Shown here: positions 7,012-64,000 of the stretch, in pieces
Numbering within the stretch: the first letter of the stretch is position 1
How the letters are laid out: each line of letters begins with the position of its first letter
Sequence record: OU509535.1
Length of the DNA stretch: 64,000 bases
Reading direction: 5' to 3' (one strand)
The notes under the pieces: model-generated
The model's database searches: none
What the model was told of the DNA's origin: nothing
What the model saw: the letters and a program-made list of their open reading frames with translations, nothing else
Position numbers and translations under genes: made by a program

Positions 7012-7734
7012 TTAATATTCCAAATAATAACCAACATCATTCGCAATATTTTGTGCTATGTTGTTGAATTGCTCAACTTCAGCTTCATCTTTAGGAACTC
7101 TTTTGAAATATACAGCAATATACCCAGTTATTGTTGCAAATTTAACAGGAGCAGAAACAAGATAAACATTTCCATCATTAACTAATGCAGGATAGTTAAT
7201 CTGAGATGTATATTCGTTTCGTGTCTCGTTACTATCTTTCAAATACTCTGTGTATATTTTTTTTATTTCAACATAATATATGTGATTATTCCATAATTTA
7301 TTAGTTTCTGCAAGAAATGAACTTAGTGGCAAGTTATCTAAATGGTAGACACTAATATCGTCTTTATTTGGTGGATTAACCTTATAGGTAACTAAAATAC
7401 GTCTTTCTGAAAATTGTGTATTTTCAGGAACATACTTATAAACTAATATCATAGATATATCATTTGGATAAGCATTGATTGCTTTAGTTAGCCCTTTATC
7501 AATAGTATCTTTATTTTCTTTCTTTATAGTATACTTCGTAGAATTTCCTAGTTCTTCATGTTTATTGGGATTGTTTAATGTATTATTGATATATAATGTC
7601 CAAGAATCTGCTGTACTATATATAATAAAACCAATAACCAAGCAAAAAAACACTGTAATTATTTTAGAAGTCTTCCATTTCGTGATCATATCAAGGAGTT
7701 TATTAATATTTTCACTATCAAAATTGATATTCAT
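7012..7734 (-). CDS. T4 holin T-like protein
   Basis: TM near N-terminus; MILVYKYVPEN ~ gpT FSAVYSFRPKN; YLVSAPV..ITGYIAVYF ~ YMYSCPY..YAGTITMYW (recalled alignment). Confidence 0.55.
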   Translation of the reverse strand: MNINFDSENINKLLDMITKWKTSKIITVFFCLVIGFIIYSTADSWTLYINNTLNNPNKHEELGNSTKYTIKKENKDTIDKGLTKAINAYPNDISMILVYKYVPENTQFSERRILVTYKVNPPNKDDISVYHLDNLPLSSFLAETNKLWNNHIYYVEIKKIYTEYLKDSNETRNEYTSQINYPALVNDGNVYLVSAPVKFATITGYIAVYFKRVPKDEAEVEQFNNIAQNIANDVGYYLEY

Positions 7735-51764: not shown

Positions 51765-51785
51765 AAATTTTAATTTAAATAGTAC

Positions 51786-51814
51786 TTGACAAAAATGTTC
51801 AGTACTTATATAAT
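51786..51814 (+). promoter_or_regulatory. sigma70 promoter for the intron-containing tRNA
   Basis: TTGACA-17-TATAAT with AGTACT at 51781 and 51801. Confidence 0.8.
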
Positions 51815-51829
51815 GTAGAAAAGAACATC

Positions 51830-52130
51830 GGGACTGTAGCTCAGGGGTGAGAGCAACCGACTCATGGTTATCGTGACTTTCACAAGCAATTGTGATTGAA
51901 AAACTGGATGAATTCAGGGAAACCTTAACACGTAATGGTGATGGCAATCCTGAGCCAAGCCCAATAAGCGTATTGGGAAGGTGCAGAGACTAGGTGGTTC
52001 AGCACGATCTTGCTGTGTAATACACCAATAGCGTCCGGCATCCTTATGGGATGATGATATAGTCCGTGCCTTTACGAAAGTATTGGATAAACGAATCGGC
52101 AGGTCGTTGGTTCAAAACCAACCAGTCCCA
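51830..52130 (+). tRNA. tRNA-CAU (probably Ile2, possibly elongator Met) split by a group I intron; exons 51830-51865 and 52094-52130
   Basis: joined exons give a cloverleaf with loop CT-CAT-AA; lacks initiator features. Confidence 0.88.
51866..52093 (+). mobile_element. group I intron (IC3, tRNA-intron type), 228 nt, no internal ORF
   Basis: P AATTCAGGGAAAC, Q AATCCTGAGCC, R GGTGCAGAGACT, S GATATAGTCC; U-G at the 5' splice site (tcat/gtga), P10 ggtt/aatc, terminal G. Confidence 0.92.
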
Positions 52131-52148
52131 CTTATTAAAGAAAATACA

Positions 52149-62499: not shown

Positions 62500-63396
62500 A
62501 TGAAAGAAGTTGATCTAAATGAACTAAGTACTGAAATCATGGAAACATTATTTGATGAATCTGATGTTGAGCAATCAAAAAATATTAAGAGTATAAAAGA
62601 TAATATTAGTCTCAAACATCCAACTGGTGTTACAAATGAAATGCTGTTAAATGAAATACATAATGGTATTAATGTAAAACAAAATCGTGAATTACTTATC
62701 CGTTATAATTATCCACTAGCAGTCAGTATTGCTAAACGTTGTAAATGTTATATTCCAGAAGAAGATAAAATTTCTTATGCAGTAGAGGGTCTTTTGAATT
62801 CAATTCATAATTTTGATGTTACAAAAGGTGTATTATTCAGTACTTATGCCAGTGCTTCCATTTACATGACAGTGATGAACATGAGTAATGAACATAATAA
62901 TTTAGTTTATATCCCCCGCCATGTAAGTGTACATAATGTTAATATTCGTAAATTTGCAAATGACTACGAAAAGAAACACGGCAAAAAATGCAAACCTGAA
63001 CTTATTTCAAAAGAACTCGGAATTAATGTTGATACTGTTGAGTTGTGTTTGTCTTTCCAGGAAACCACATCTCTTGATACTCCAACTTCTGATGATAGTA
63101 CTGCATTAATTGATACCATTGCCAGTGATTGTAATGTAGAACAAAATGACGTTGATAGTATTGTTCTGGAATTGATGAATGAACTAGAACCAAAAGAAAA
63201 GGAAATCCTTTCCAGAATTTATGGTTTAAATGGATATGCACCTGAAACCTATGATAGCTTGATCAGTACTGGATTTTATGATAAAAAGGGTAAACGTATT
63301 ACTGTTCGCGGAACTTTACACTACAAATTTAGTACTGCACTTGAGAAACTAAAGCGTTTGGTTCGTCTAAAAGGATTAACTGCCAAAGATGTTTAA
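62500..63396 (+). CDS. sigma70-family RNA polymerase sigma factor
   Basis: region 2 (NYPLAVSIAK, EGLL..FDVTKG.LFSTYA, VYIP), region 3 (SLDTP), region 4 (LEPKEKEIL..YGL). Confidence 0.9.
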   Translation: MKEVDLNELSTEIMETLFDESDVEQSKNIKSIKDNISLKHPTGVTNEMLLNEIHNGINVKQNRELLIRYNYPLAVSIAKRCKCYIPEEDKISYAVEGLLNSIHNFDVTKGVLFSTYASASIYMTVMNMSNEHNNLVYIPRHVSVHNVNIRKFANDYEKKHGKKCKPELISKELGINVDTVELCLSFQETTSLDTPTSDDSTALIDTIASDCNVEQNDVDSIVLELMNELEPKEKEILSRIYGLNGYAPETYDSLISTGFYDKKGKRITVRGTLHYKFSTALEKLKRLVRLKGLTAKDV

Positions 63397-63422
63397 ATTG
63401 ATATTTTTTCTTTATTAAATAC

Positions 63423-63451
63423 TTGAACAAAATTTTTTACAGTGATATAAT
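63423..63451 (+). promoter_or_regulatory. sigma70-type promoter
   Basis: TTGAAC-17-TATAAT, TGn. Confidence 0.8.
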
Positions 63452-63456
63452 GTTTG

Positions 63457-64000
63457 TAATACATGGATGTTGGACATTCTTTTTGAAAAGAACGTATGGA
63501 TAAAAACCCGATTAGCCGAAAATGTAACGCTACGGATGAGTATAACCAACATATACGAGATGCAGAGGATACCCGAAAGGCGAGACGGCATCTAAAAGGA
63601 TAGGAAATAGCACTGCCTATCCCAAGCTTACATTAGGCTTGATAGATCGCAAATCTGGTTGAGTCCAGACAAATAAAGAGTGTAAGGGAGATTATTTTCT
63701 TTTAGATATTTTGGAAATAATCACGGTACTGAATTGCTTGAATAGTTCGGTACTGAAGTGCAAGTATGTTTAAACTTGTGACCGTTGCATGTGACTGCGA
63801 TAGGACGAAACAGGGCAACCCGCGTTCGTGTACCGAAAGGTATAATTCGCAATTCAAGGAATTTCGACAGCTACGAGCTTCAAGGCTTAGCTTTTTATTT
63901 CTCTTCCCCTCCCTGTGGGGGGATGAAAATATCTCGTGCAAACGCCTTCAAGTATTGAAATTCACGAAGTGAATTGAAATTACTTGTTCTGTAGTCGAAC
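63457..64000 (+). ncRNA. candidate large structured ncRNA (runs off window)
   Basis: no credible CDS; GC-richer than flanks; many helices (agatgc/gcatct, ggatagg/cctatcc, gaattgc/gcaattc, aattcac/gtgaatt). Confidence 0.6.

Follow-up and report, generated by a model that had tools for sequence, protein, structure and literature searches.

To our knowledge large and elaborate RNAs are rare in bacteria and their phages, and each described class (RNase P, the group I and group II introns, OLE, GOLLD and ROOL) is a ribozyme, the core of a ribonucleoprotein or an RNA-only assembly. Other phage and plasmid systems also employ sizeable or structured RNAs: phi29 encodes the structured pRNA (RF00044), which forms an oligomer through intermolecular loop-loop pairing, and the ColE1 RNA II and T4 oriF, oriG and oriE transcripts are promoter-driven non-coding RNAs of several hundred nucleotides (nt) that prime leading-strand synthesis, RNA II having a defined fold with G-rich and C-rich elements and T4 having several dispersed origins. 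ROOL is ~659 nt long, occurs in phages and prophages, often near tRNA islands, and has multiple pseudoknots and no protein partner, and one of its contacts, which covariation had suggested to be tertiary, turned out to be a quaternary kissing loop (PMC12286853). GOLLD is a large phage and prophage RNA found near tRNAs, with an organisation in domains, a variable linker and an expression that rises during lysis, and both ROOL and GOLLD form RNA-only cages of unknown function (PMC12286853). In the jumbo phage PA5oct four RNAs free of open reading frames (ORFs), ncRNA001-004, of 236-619 nt, were defined by RNA-seq, two of them highly transcribed throughout infection (PMC7318152). Here we describe a large structured RNA encoded at the end of a 64,000-nt stretch of sequence record OU509535.1 (hereafter the window, meaning the whole stretch analysed), a RaK2-like Klebsiella jumbo phage of 347.5 kb.

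The RNA gene occupies positions 63458-64000 of the plus strand, with a start placed ~7 nt past the -10 element of its own promoter, and is cut by the end of the window and of the record, which hold the first 543 nt (the 5' ~85-90%) of what would be a molecule of ~610-650 nt. Judged from comparative sequence analysis, the gene is self-contained and encodes a large RNA whose pseudoknotted fold is under strong constraint; the family of this RNA is absent from Rfam 15. The molecule is predicted to consist of three parts: a 5' domain, a core with two stacked long-range helices and a loop-strand contact, and a 3' domain. Our confidence in the gene and its fold is high, and in its mechanism low.

Fold and covariation

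The nhmmer profile of the family, which covers the entire unit in 94 copies, yielded 81 unique sequences, 45 of them below 96% identity, and nearly all copies span the full ~600-nt profile. Four MAFFT alignments (A1-A4) were used, A4 for the formal covariation test, alongside an all-against-all scan of the 45 sequences that assumes no structure. RNAalifold applied to 23 copies gave 57 pairs, 34 of them with compensatory change, and the unbiased scan recovered the same helices, its top entries being 63738-63743/63852-63857, 63731-63735/63744-63748, 63796-63800/63847-63851, 63559-63563/63588-63592 and 63803-63807/63823-63827. Within the core in A4, 91.0% of cells are paired compared with 74.2% in shuffles and 37-44% with slid partners, double-change cells number 348 against 119, and the covariation score is 0.481 against 0.182, with 0 of 500 shuffles doing as well on all five measures. 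A covariance model built for the core (R1) has one credible match in the window, at 63721-63886 (130 bits, E = 3e-34).

This core (63721-63886, plus strand, as are all the elements below) is the most conserved part of the RNA and includes the invariant blocks GACCGUUGCA (63781-63790) and GCAACCCGC (63815-63823). It opens with a 12-base-pair (bp) hairpin, P_A (63724-63755), formed by cggtactgaatt and agttcggtactg, in which double changes occur at 12 of 12 pairs; the window and RaK2 differ here at two positions and the pairing is kept by both changes. The loop of P_A supplies the 5' strand of the helix that heads the unbiased scan, ttgaat/attcaa (63738-63743/63852-63857), which is 100% paired, with six of six pairs changed on both sides, none changed on one side, none broken and 74 double-change cells in all. 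Since the P_A loop is paired with a strand ~110 nt further 3', the contact is of the pseudoknot or kissing type. A second long-range helix, tgcga/tcgca (63796-63800/63847-63851), is 99% paired and is predicted to stack with the loop-to-distal helix. Between its strands lie the hairpin ggacg/cgttc (63803-63827; 100% paired, double changes in three pairs), whose invariant loop contains a GCAAC that could pair with the invariant GUUGC at 63784-63788, and a variable hairpin, guacc-GAAA-gguau (63830-63843; 85% paired, four pairs with double changes), which bears a 30-45-nt insertion in many relatives.

In the 5' domain pairing is at least 95% in helices P2, P3, P4 and P4a, and double changes are numerous. 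Hairpin P2 (63508-63535), CCG..UAGC/GCUA..CGG, carries the conserved loop CGAAAAYGUA, each of its pairs being kept in 91-100% of cases and showing up to 15 double changes; hairpin P3 (63540-63556), GUAUA/UAUAC, preceded by an invariant GAUGAG, is 100% paired with 12-14 double changes per pair; and helix P4 (63559-63592), gatgc/gcatc, encloses GAAGAAACCCG and a small GAAA-capped hairpin, its five pairs being 98-100% paired with 40 double-change cells. There follow three lineage-variable hairpins (63598-63669), ggatagg/cctatcc, aagcuu/aggcuu and ucugg/ccaga, separated by a conserved GAUAGA and followed by the invariant UAAGGGAG at 63684-63691. RaK2 carries two copies of the RNA, A and B, identical over their 3' ~430 nt and differing over the 5' 240 nt by changes that preserve pairing, and these three hairpins are compensated between them: from A to B ggatagg/cctatcc becomes gggcaa/ttgccc, tctgg/ccaga becomes tccag/ctgga and aagcuu/aggcuu becomes aaucuc/gagauu. 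Equivalent hairpins of different sequence occur in other phages.

Downstream of the core a U-rich linker (63882-63900) includes a weak terminator-like hairpin, aaggc-tta-gcttt (5 bp, two of them G-C pairs), followed by U-rich sequence. The 3' domain, of which 63903-64000 lies before the window end, begins in every copy with an invariant C-run/G-run hairpin (63906-63922), GAUGAAAAU and CAAAYSYCDUCA, and contains two covarying hairpins with 15/14/3/9 and 7/14/20/4/6 double changes, one of them capped by a conserved GAACGA...AGUGA loop. A further hairpin, aattcac/gtgaatt at 63960-63976, is specific to this lineage.

The helices proposed in the original prediction, which was made from the letters of the window, proved about half right. 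Three local ones were upheld: the inner 5 bp of agatgc/gcatct (63559-63563/63588-63592) correspond to P4, tacc-GAAA-ggta (63831-63834/63839-63842) is the base of the covarying variable hairpin of the core, and ggatagg/cctatcc (63598-63604/63616-63622) is the first of the lineage-variable hairpins. The fourth local helix, aattcac/gtgaatt, is present in the sequence of this lineage and finds no comparative support (26% paired). All four long-range pairings fail, one by register alone. For tggac/gtcca, the gtcca belongs to the local hairpin tctgg/ccaga; ttcgac/gtcgaa, with 54% of cells paired, clashes with a local hairpin; and the suggested pseudoknot aatgtaa/ttacatt is paired in 39% and absent in copy B. 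The remaining one, gaattgc/gcaattc, lies in the right neighbourhood and is no better than shuffles (61% against 60% paired) because the true partners, ttgaat/attcaa and tgcga/tcgca, are offset from it by a few bases.

Promoter, strand and coding potential

A -35-like hexamer, TTGAAC (63423-63428), is followed, with a 17-nt spacer, by an extended -10 element, TGaTATAAT (63443-63451; TG at 63443-63444 and TATAAT at 63446-63451), both on the plus strand. Taken as a lone site this promoter is not above chance, there being 12 promoter-like sites against 14.2 expected in shuffles. We accept it because the same arrangement (a -35-like element, ~17 nt, an extended -10) is kept directly 5' of 45 of 45 non-redundant homologues, for example at ~1180-1215 of locus L006 and ~2700-2740 of locus L040. 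Among the copies the -35-like element, conserved in the homologues, reads TGAAACG, TGAAACA, TGGGACA or TTGAACA, with the general form TG(A/G)(A/G)AC(A/G), and the -10 is in all copies TGnTATAAT or TGnTATACT. The promoter is, by its sequence, of a conserved sigma-70 type with an extended -10. Phage CBB has a 'divergent RpoD-like' promoter class, TGAAACG, linked to DNA-synthesis genes, and the combination of TGAAAC(G/A) with an extended -10 found here fits the class of that name reported for CBB and GAP32 (PMC5259590).

On the plus strand the minimum free energy is -155.4 kcal/mol (z = -4.4, with 0 of 100 shuffles as good), whilst the complement folds at -135.7, i.e. 20 kcal/mol less stably. The supported helices contain 112 G.U but only 3 A.C combinations, and the plus strand is therefore the RNA and the constraint acts on RNA rather than on DNA. 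The G+C fraction at 63500-63999 is 0.41 compared with 0.27-0.37 across the 5.5 kb upstream.

The longest plus-strand ORF in the region encodes 68 amino acids (aa). Across the 45 homologues its length modulo three is spread 14/15/16, in-frame stops interrupt it in 43 of 45, and column entropy by codon position is 0.77/0.61/0.64, so that the third position is not the most variable. A protein-coding gene (RaK2 ORF245, Muenster gene 491 or the K64-1 hypotheticals) was accordingly rejected, the frame not being kept and no codon-position bias being present, as was a small ORF following GGGGGGAUG, where 1-nt indels shift the frame while the nucleotides remain conserved. Public records place 'hypothetical protein' calls over the RNA (window 63766-63972 and homologues), namely RaK2 ORF245 (68 aa), Muenster gene 491 (43 aa) and five in NC_027399; these look spurious because their frames are not conserved.

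In these respects the original prediction of a promoter-driven, large structured RNA of raised G+C content, without a credible coding sequence and running off the window, has stood, the promoter by its conservation and the structure by heavy covariation that includes a pseudoknot-type contact. It does continue past the window: in relatives the homologous RNA extends ~60-115 nt beyond the cut (in RaK2 to ~7664-7715 of locus L001, where window position = L001 position + 56399).

Distribution and paralogues

A sensitive BLAST search with the RaK2 gap (the intergenic interval that holds copy A) matched 62 phage records, all ~350-kb jumbo phages and mostly at two or more places per genome, which infect Escherichia, Klebsiella, Salmonella, Yersinia, Pectobacterium, Erwinia and Xanthomonas. 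Overall, 71 of 50,697 phage records carry the RNA, all of them jumbo phages with it at 1-5 places each, as do 2 of 5,426 complete Escherichia coli genomes; no copy was found in plasmids. A search with the core pattern retrieved 26 loci in IMG/VR, 7 in bacterial assemblies and 50 in metagenomes.

The RNA repeatedly fills gene-free gaps. RaK2 copy B lies in another 740-nt gene-free gap, 88 kb from copy A, and in 121Q, CBB, fHe-Yen9-04, XbC2, Hallingskeid and EJP2 the match again falls within a gap of 740-830 nt, these gaps aligning end to end. Copies may be widely dispersed, as on one 366-kb contig with the RNA at ~42, 188, 269 and 332 kb. In the tree the copies of one genome fall in separate clades, each common to other phages, and the paralogues are therefore old and have been maintained separately. 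Only the two copies of RaK2 cluster together, as expected from their identical 3' part. The neighbouring genes in jumbo phages differ among the paralogues, in 121Q both neighbours lie on the opposite strand, and clustering of the flanking ORFs found no protein partner common to all contexts, which together argue for an RNA acting in trans.

Chromosomal islands

Unexpectedly, the matches in bacterial assemblies lie in enterobacterial chromosomes. Enterobacter chinensis has, in succession, an ATPase gene of the chromosome, a serine recombinase, the RNA and a divergent CI-like repressor, and strain RIT714 has suhB, corC, a tyrosine integrase and the RNA. Some 10-12 loci, among them the bacterial contigs L040, L042, L043 and L046, share a layout of integrase (tyrosine or serine), RNA, CI-like S24 repressor, Cro-like winged helix-turn-helix protein, a 286-aa protein of unknown function (ORF286), an LprI-like protein and a DNA invertase. 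Both E. coli genomes have the RNA in a ~10-kb island beside ffs in a stretch lacking PGAP annotation, as in strain LR-29-1 (L097 4959-15303). The E. coli island adds DUF4326, DUF488 and dual-OB genes, which match the PADLOC candidate PDC-M45A, and over the islands as a whole the PADLOC defence candidates matched are PDC-M45A (1e-58), PDC-S73 and PDC-M01B. The islands contain no structural genes and no recognisable replication genes and could therefore be satellites or defence islands. Their RNA copies form one clade that adjoins a jumbo-phage paralogue class and keep the same promoter form, raising the question of whether a jumbo-phage factor recognises the promoter there.

Comparison with known RNA families

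At gathering score Rfam 15 finds in the window only six tRNAs and a group I intron 11 kb away. With lax filters (E<=10) the cut copy and the full RaK2 copy stayed at chance level, and the island copies gave nothing either (a gathering scan of seven loci and a lax scan, at E<=5 or E<=10, of the E. coli copy). The matches, all at chance level, included CRISPR-DR37, Gut-1, mt-tmRNA (18 bits, the gathering score being 65) and IS102. Hence the original prediction, which placed the RNA in neither ROOL nor GOLLD and allowed for a new class, holds good against the Rfam 15 models, including those for RNase P, tmRNA and introns. ROOL (RF03087) had no covariance-model match in the window, cut-copy, RaK2 or island scans, nor GOLLD (RF01998) in any Rfam scan. 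RNase P RNA (RF00010, RF00011, RF00373) gave no match at E<=10 and the order of blocks is not collinear with it; the succession ACGACCGUUGCA...GCAACCCGC, which we took to be faintly reminiscent of E. coli M1 RNA, was dismissed on these two grounds. ARAGORN found no tmRNA or tRNA-like structure in L001 6900-7900, and there is no group I or group II intron in 63300-64000, the only one matched in the window being at 51778-52086, 11 kb off. A hammerhead-like CAGAUGAG...GAA was also discarded, its core positions varying (A/U at the invariant A6; A/G/C at U4) and no Rfam ribozyme model matching it. The papers on RaK2, CBB and PA5oct, a catalogue of viral structured RNAs from 2023, an intergenic-mapping preprint from 2026 and keyword searches yielded no description of the RNA.

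Like ROOL, the RNA (about 610-770 nt) resides in phages and integrative islands, lies between tRNA clusters (copy A), has a covarying loop-distal helix and lacks a common neighbour. It differs in having no sequence or structure match to ROOL, in its hosts (Enterobacterales and jumbo phages here, Firmicutes or rumen organisms for ROOL), in its 1-5 ancient paralogues per genome and in a dedicated conserved promoter within the unit. With GOLLD it shares a conserved core, variable peripheral hairpins and a U-rich linker. GOLLD, however, is larger (>800 nt), gives no match to the RNA in Rfam scans and is universally conserved in its 3' region, whereas here conserved blocks run through all three domains. 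The pRNA of phi29 is 174 nt long, is confined to phi29-like phages and acts at the portal, and the RNA here has no match to RF00044; jumbo myoviruses package their DNA with a terminase. The PA5oct ncRNAs are similarly non-coding and come from a jumbo phage of the same broad clade, but neither nhmmer nor covariance model R1 found homology to ncRNA001-004 in their four loci. As with the ColE1 RNA II and T4 origin transcripts, the conserved promoter and the absence of a coding signal predict a promoter-driven non-coding transcript; no homology to them is shown and the fold constraint here covers the whole molecule, tertiary-type contacts included.

Genomic position and neighbouring genes

The final 1.6 kb of the window is the end of OU509535.1 (100% identical) and has 97.6-99.4% identity with RaK2, K64-1, KP13-7, RCIP0023, phiKp_21 and Muenster, all Alcyoneusvirus. 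In RaK2 L001 the end of the sigma-factor gene (6997) and the start of the next solid gene (7742) enclose a 745-nt gap whose sole ORF is the doubtful one of 68 aa (Muenster annotates a different length there), and the window region represents the initial ~543 nt of this RaK2-type gap content. The adjoining upstream gene (62500-63396) encodes a phage RpoD-like sigma factor of 298 aa, so annotated in RaK2, KP13-7 and Muenster, and no terminator was detected between it and the RNA promoter.

At 64000 the source record was opened into linear form within the RNA gene, in the ~430 nt over which the two copies of this phage do not differ. Copy B lies at ~85.0-85.6 kb of the record, and the 64-kb window itself contains no second copy. 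Contigs from other samples break at the same repeat limits (L019 1969 and 2399), where depth doubles, and the record end at 64000 is a repeat-caused assembly break and not the genome end.

RaK2 has 'tRNA-OTHER' pseudo-features at L001 10382-10468 and 11274-11349, 2.7-3.6 kb past the window end. These lie 3' of the RNA and therefore place copy A between tRNA-bearing stretches, as is often the case for ROOL and GOLLD. Further upstream the window contains an intron-split tRNA(CAU) gene (51787-52131) that ARAGORN missed. It has a consensus promoter, TTGACA-17-TATAAT, at 51787-51815; its 5' exon (~51830-51856) runs as far as CTCAT in the anticodon loop, and its 3' exon lies at ~52094-52131 (ends judged by eye). 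Its intron is of group I (Rfam 89.9 bits), and the Rfam alignment starts too early (51778), with the 5' exon taken as an insertion.

Discussion

The reading we prefer, with slightly more confidence than doubt, is that the gene encodes a member of a new family of large, trans-acting, compactly folded phage RNAs, analogous but not homologous to ROOL and GOLLD. Such an RNA would act in trans, abundant and compactly folded, rather than serving as an mRNA, as an antisense RNA or as a leader. If ROOL and GOLLD are a guide, its working form is probably a particle made only of RNA or centred on RNA, in which the invariant single-stranded blocks CGAAAAYGUA, GAUAGA, UAAGGGAG, GACCGUUGCA, GCAACCCGC and GGGGGGAUGAAAAU would form a tertiary or binding core. 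The covarying loop-to-distal helix could, on the same analogy, be an intermolecular contact that builds an oligomer, covariation being equally compatible with pairing within and between molecules. Presence in lytic jumbo phages and in defence-type islands suggests a role in infection-time conflict or takeover.

Several points tell against this reading. The proposed function and the oligomer are drawn entirely by analogy, and the RNA is not homologous to ROOL or GOLLD. Over the variable hairpins the MAFFT alignments are imperfect and only approximate, and the shuffle controls keep phylogenetic signal, kinship being addressed by the slid-partner control. The possible pairs GUUGC/GCAAC, CCCC/GGGG and GAUGA/UCGUC are invariant and hence beyond the covariation test. 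Wastewater metagenomic runs labelled RNA-Seq (X1-X14) contain 0.77-0.78 of the sampled words of the query, at up to ~165x word depth in X1, with even depth over genes and intergenic DNA that is doubled only on the 430-nt A/B repeat; these runs behave as total nucleic acid or DNA and are unusable as evidence of transcription, and the ends of the RNA are therefore placed from the promoter and from conservation. Moreover, no consistent 3' terminator follows the unit across the copies, and the internal terminator-like hairpin of 24 of 45 copies could mean that a shorter species is the main one there.

This last observation bears on whether the locus makes one RNA or two, as the original prediction had also entertained. 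An RNA of ~430-450 nt ending at the internal hairpin and U-run, with the remaining ~170-220 nt either separate or produced by read-through, would account for a terminator-like hairpin with U6-7 at one alignment position in those 24 copies and for a linker that is U-rich in all. The hairpin is, however, absent from the other 21 copies, including all those in islands, and weak in the window, no second promoter lies between the parts, the parts are never separate in 94 copies and the downstream part, with covarying helices of its own, must be transcribed. We read the RNA as one gene because the 3' domain is never found apart and carries these helices; two products therefore seem unlikely, although some phages may yield a shorter isoform, and to that degree the earlier suggestion survives. 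The same hairpin, standing after a large folded domain in about half of the copies, together with the same-strand genes downstream in RaK2, might recall a cis-regulatory leader (riboswitch, attenuator or thermosensor) for the downstream genes, which we consider scarcely credible given that those genes are unrelated among paralogues and contexts and on the opposite strand in 121Q, that ~200 nt of conserved structured RNA lie 3' of the hairpin and that no riboswitch family matches. Hardly any weight falls on the idea that the models missed a distant member of some catalogued family (ROOL, GOLLD, RNase P, tmRNA, a group I or II intron, 6S or pRNA): size and lifestyle resemble those of ROOL and GOLLD (PMC12286853), but lax filters gave no credible match at E<=10 for the cut, full RaK2 and island copies and ARAGORN gave nothing.

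After a trans-acting folded RNA we rank second a replication-origin primer, a persistent R-loop that would prime the leading strand at several origins per 350-kb genome and could let islands with a copy be replicated by an infecting jumbo phage. To this would belong the conserved promoter of the CBB 'TGAAACG' class tied to DNA-synthesis genes (PMC5259590), the 1-5 dispersed copies per genome as ancient and stably placed paralogues, the invariant C-run/G-run followed by A/U-rich sequence, and the lack both of a common protein partner and of a recognisable replication gene in the islands. We nonetheless hold it improbable: all 600 nt are fold-constrained with long-range and loop-strand contacts, as would be expected of a compact free RNA more than of a primer bound to DNA, the chromosomal island copies stand behind a promoter that looks competent for sigma-70, where origin firing would be harmful, and neither iterons nor a gene for an origin-binding protein is consistently adjacent. 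No more probable is a conflict RNA in the stricter sense, whereby the RNA serves the phage in its phage copies and has been captured by the islands as a decoy or interferer, or whereby both use it to exclude other phages, its target being an infection factor. The compact int/cI/cro islands with their defence candidates (PDC-M45A at 1e-58, PDC-S73 and PDC-M01B), the position of the RNA directly after the integrase, typical of cargo, the placement of the island clade beside one jumbo-phage paralogue class, which implies transfer, and the retention of the same promoter form are what one would expect from it. It is wholly inferential, though, the PADLOC 'PDC' families are mere candidates, and in jumbo phages the RNA is a stable core feature and not a mobile accessory gene. 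A combined scheme, in which an RNA particle assembled via the loop-strand contact is used on both sides of the conflict, the phages needing the RNA and jumbo-phage infection switching on, through a promoter of the same phage type, a decoy or interfering copy captured by the islands, is speculative and we think it unlikely, to about the extent that we doubt two products; if true, it would amount to an RNA-based anti-phage or satellite strategy.

For a large, trans-acting folded RNA, as we prefer to read it, function is directly testable because the carriers include cultivable phages (RaK2, K64-1, 121Q, PBECO4, CBB and others) with tractable hosts (E. coli, Klebsiella and Salmonella); such direct functional testing has been hard for ROOL and GOLLD. 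Several of the carrier phages are candidates for phage therapy, the RNA is overlaid in present annotations by spurious 'hypothetical proteins', and assemblies break at its exact repeat. For the jumbo phages and the bacteria that share this RNA, its ancient multi-copy state and the defence-type islands in which it also occurs are hints that it takes part in conflicts between phage and host or among phages.

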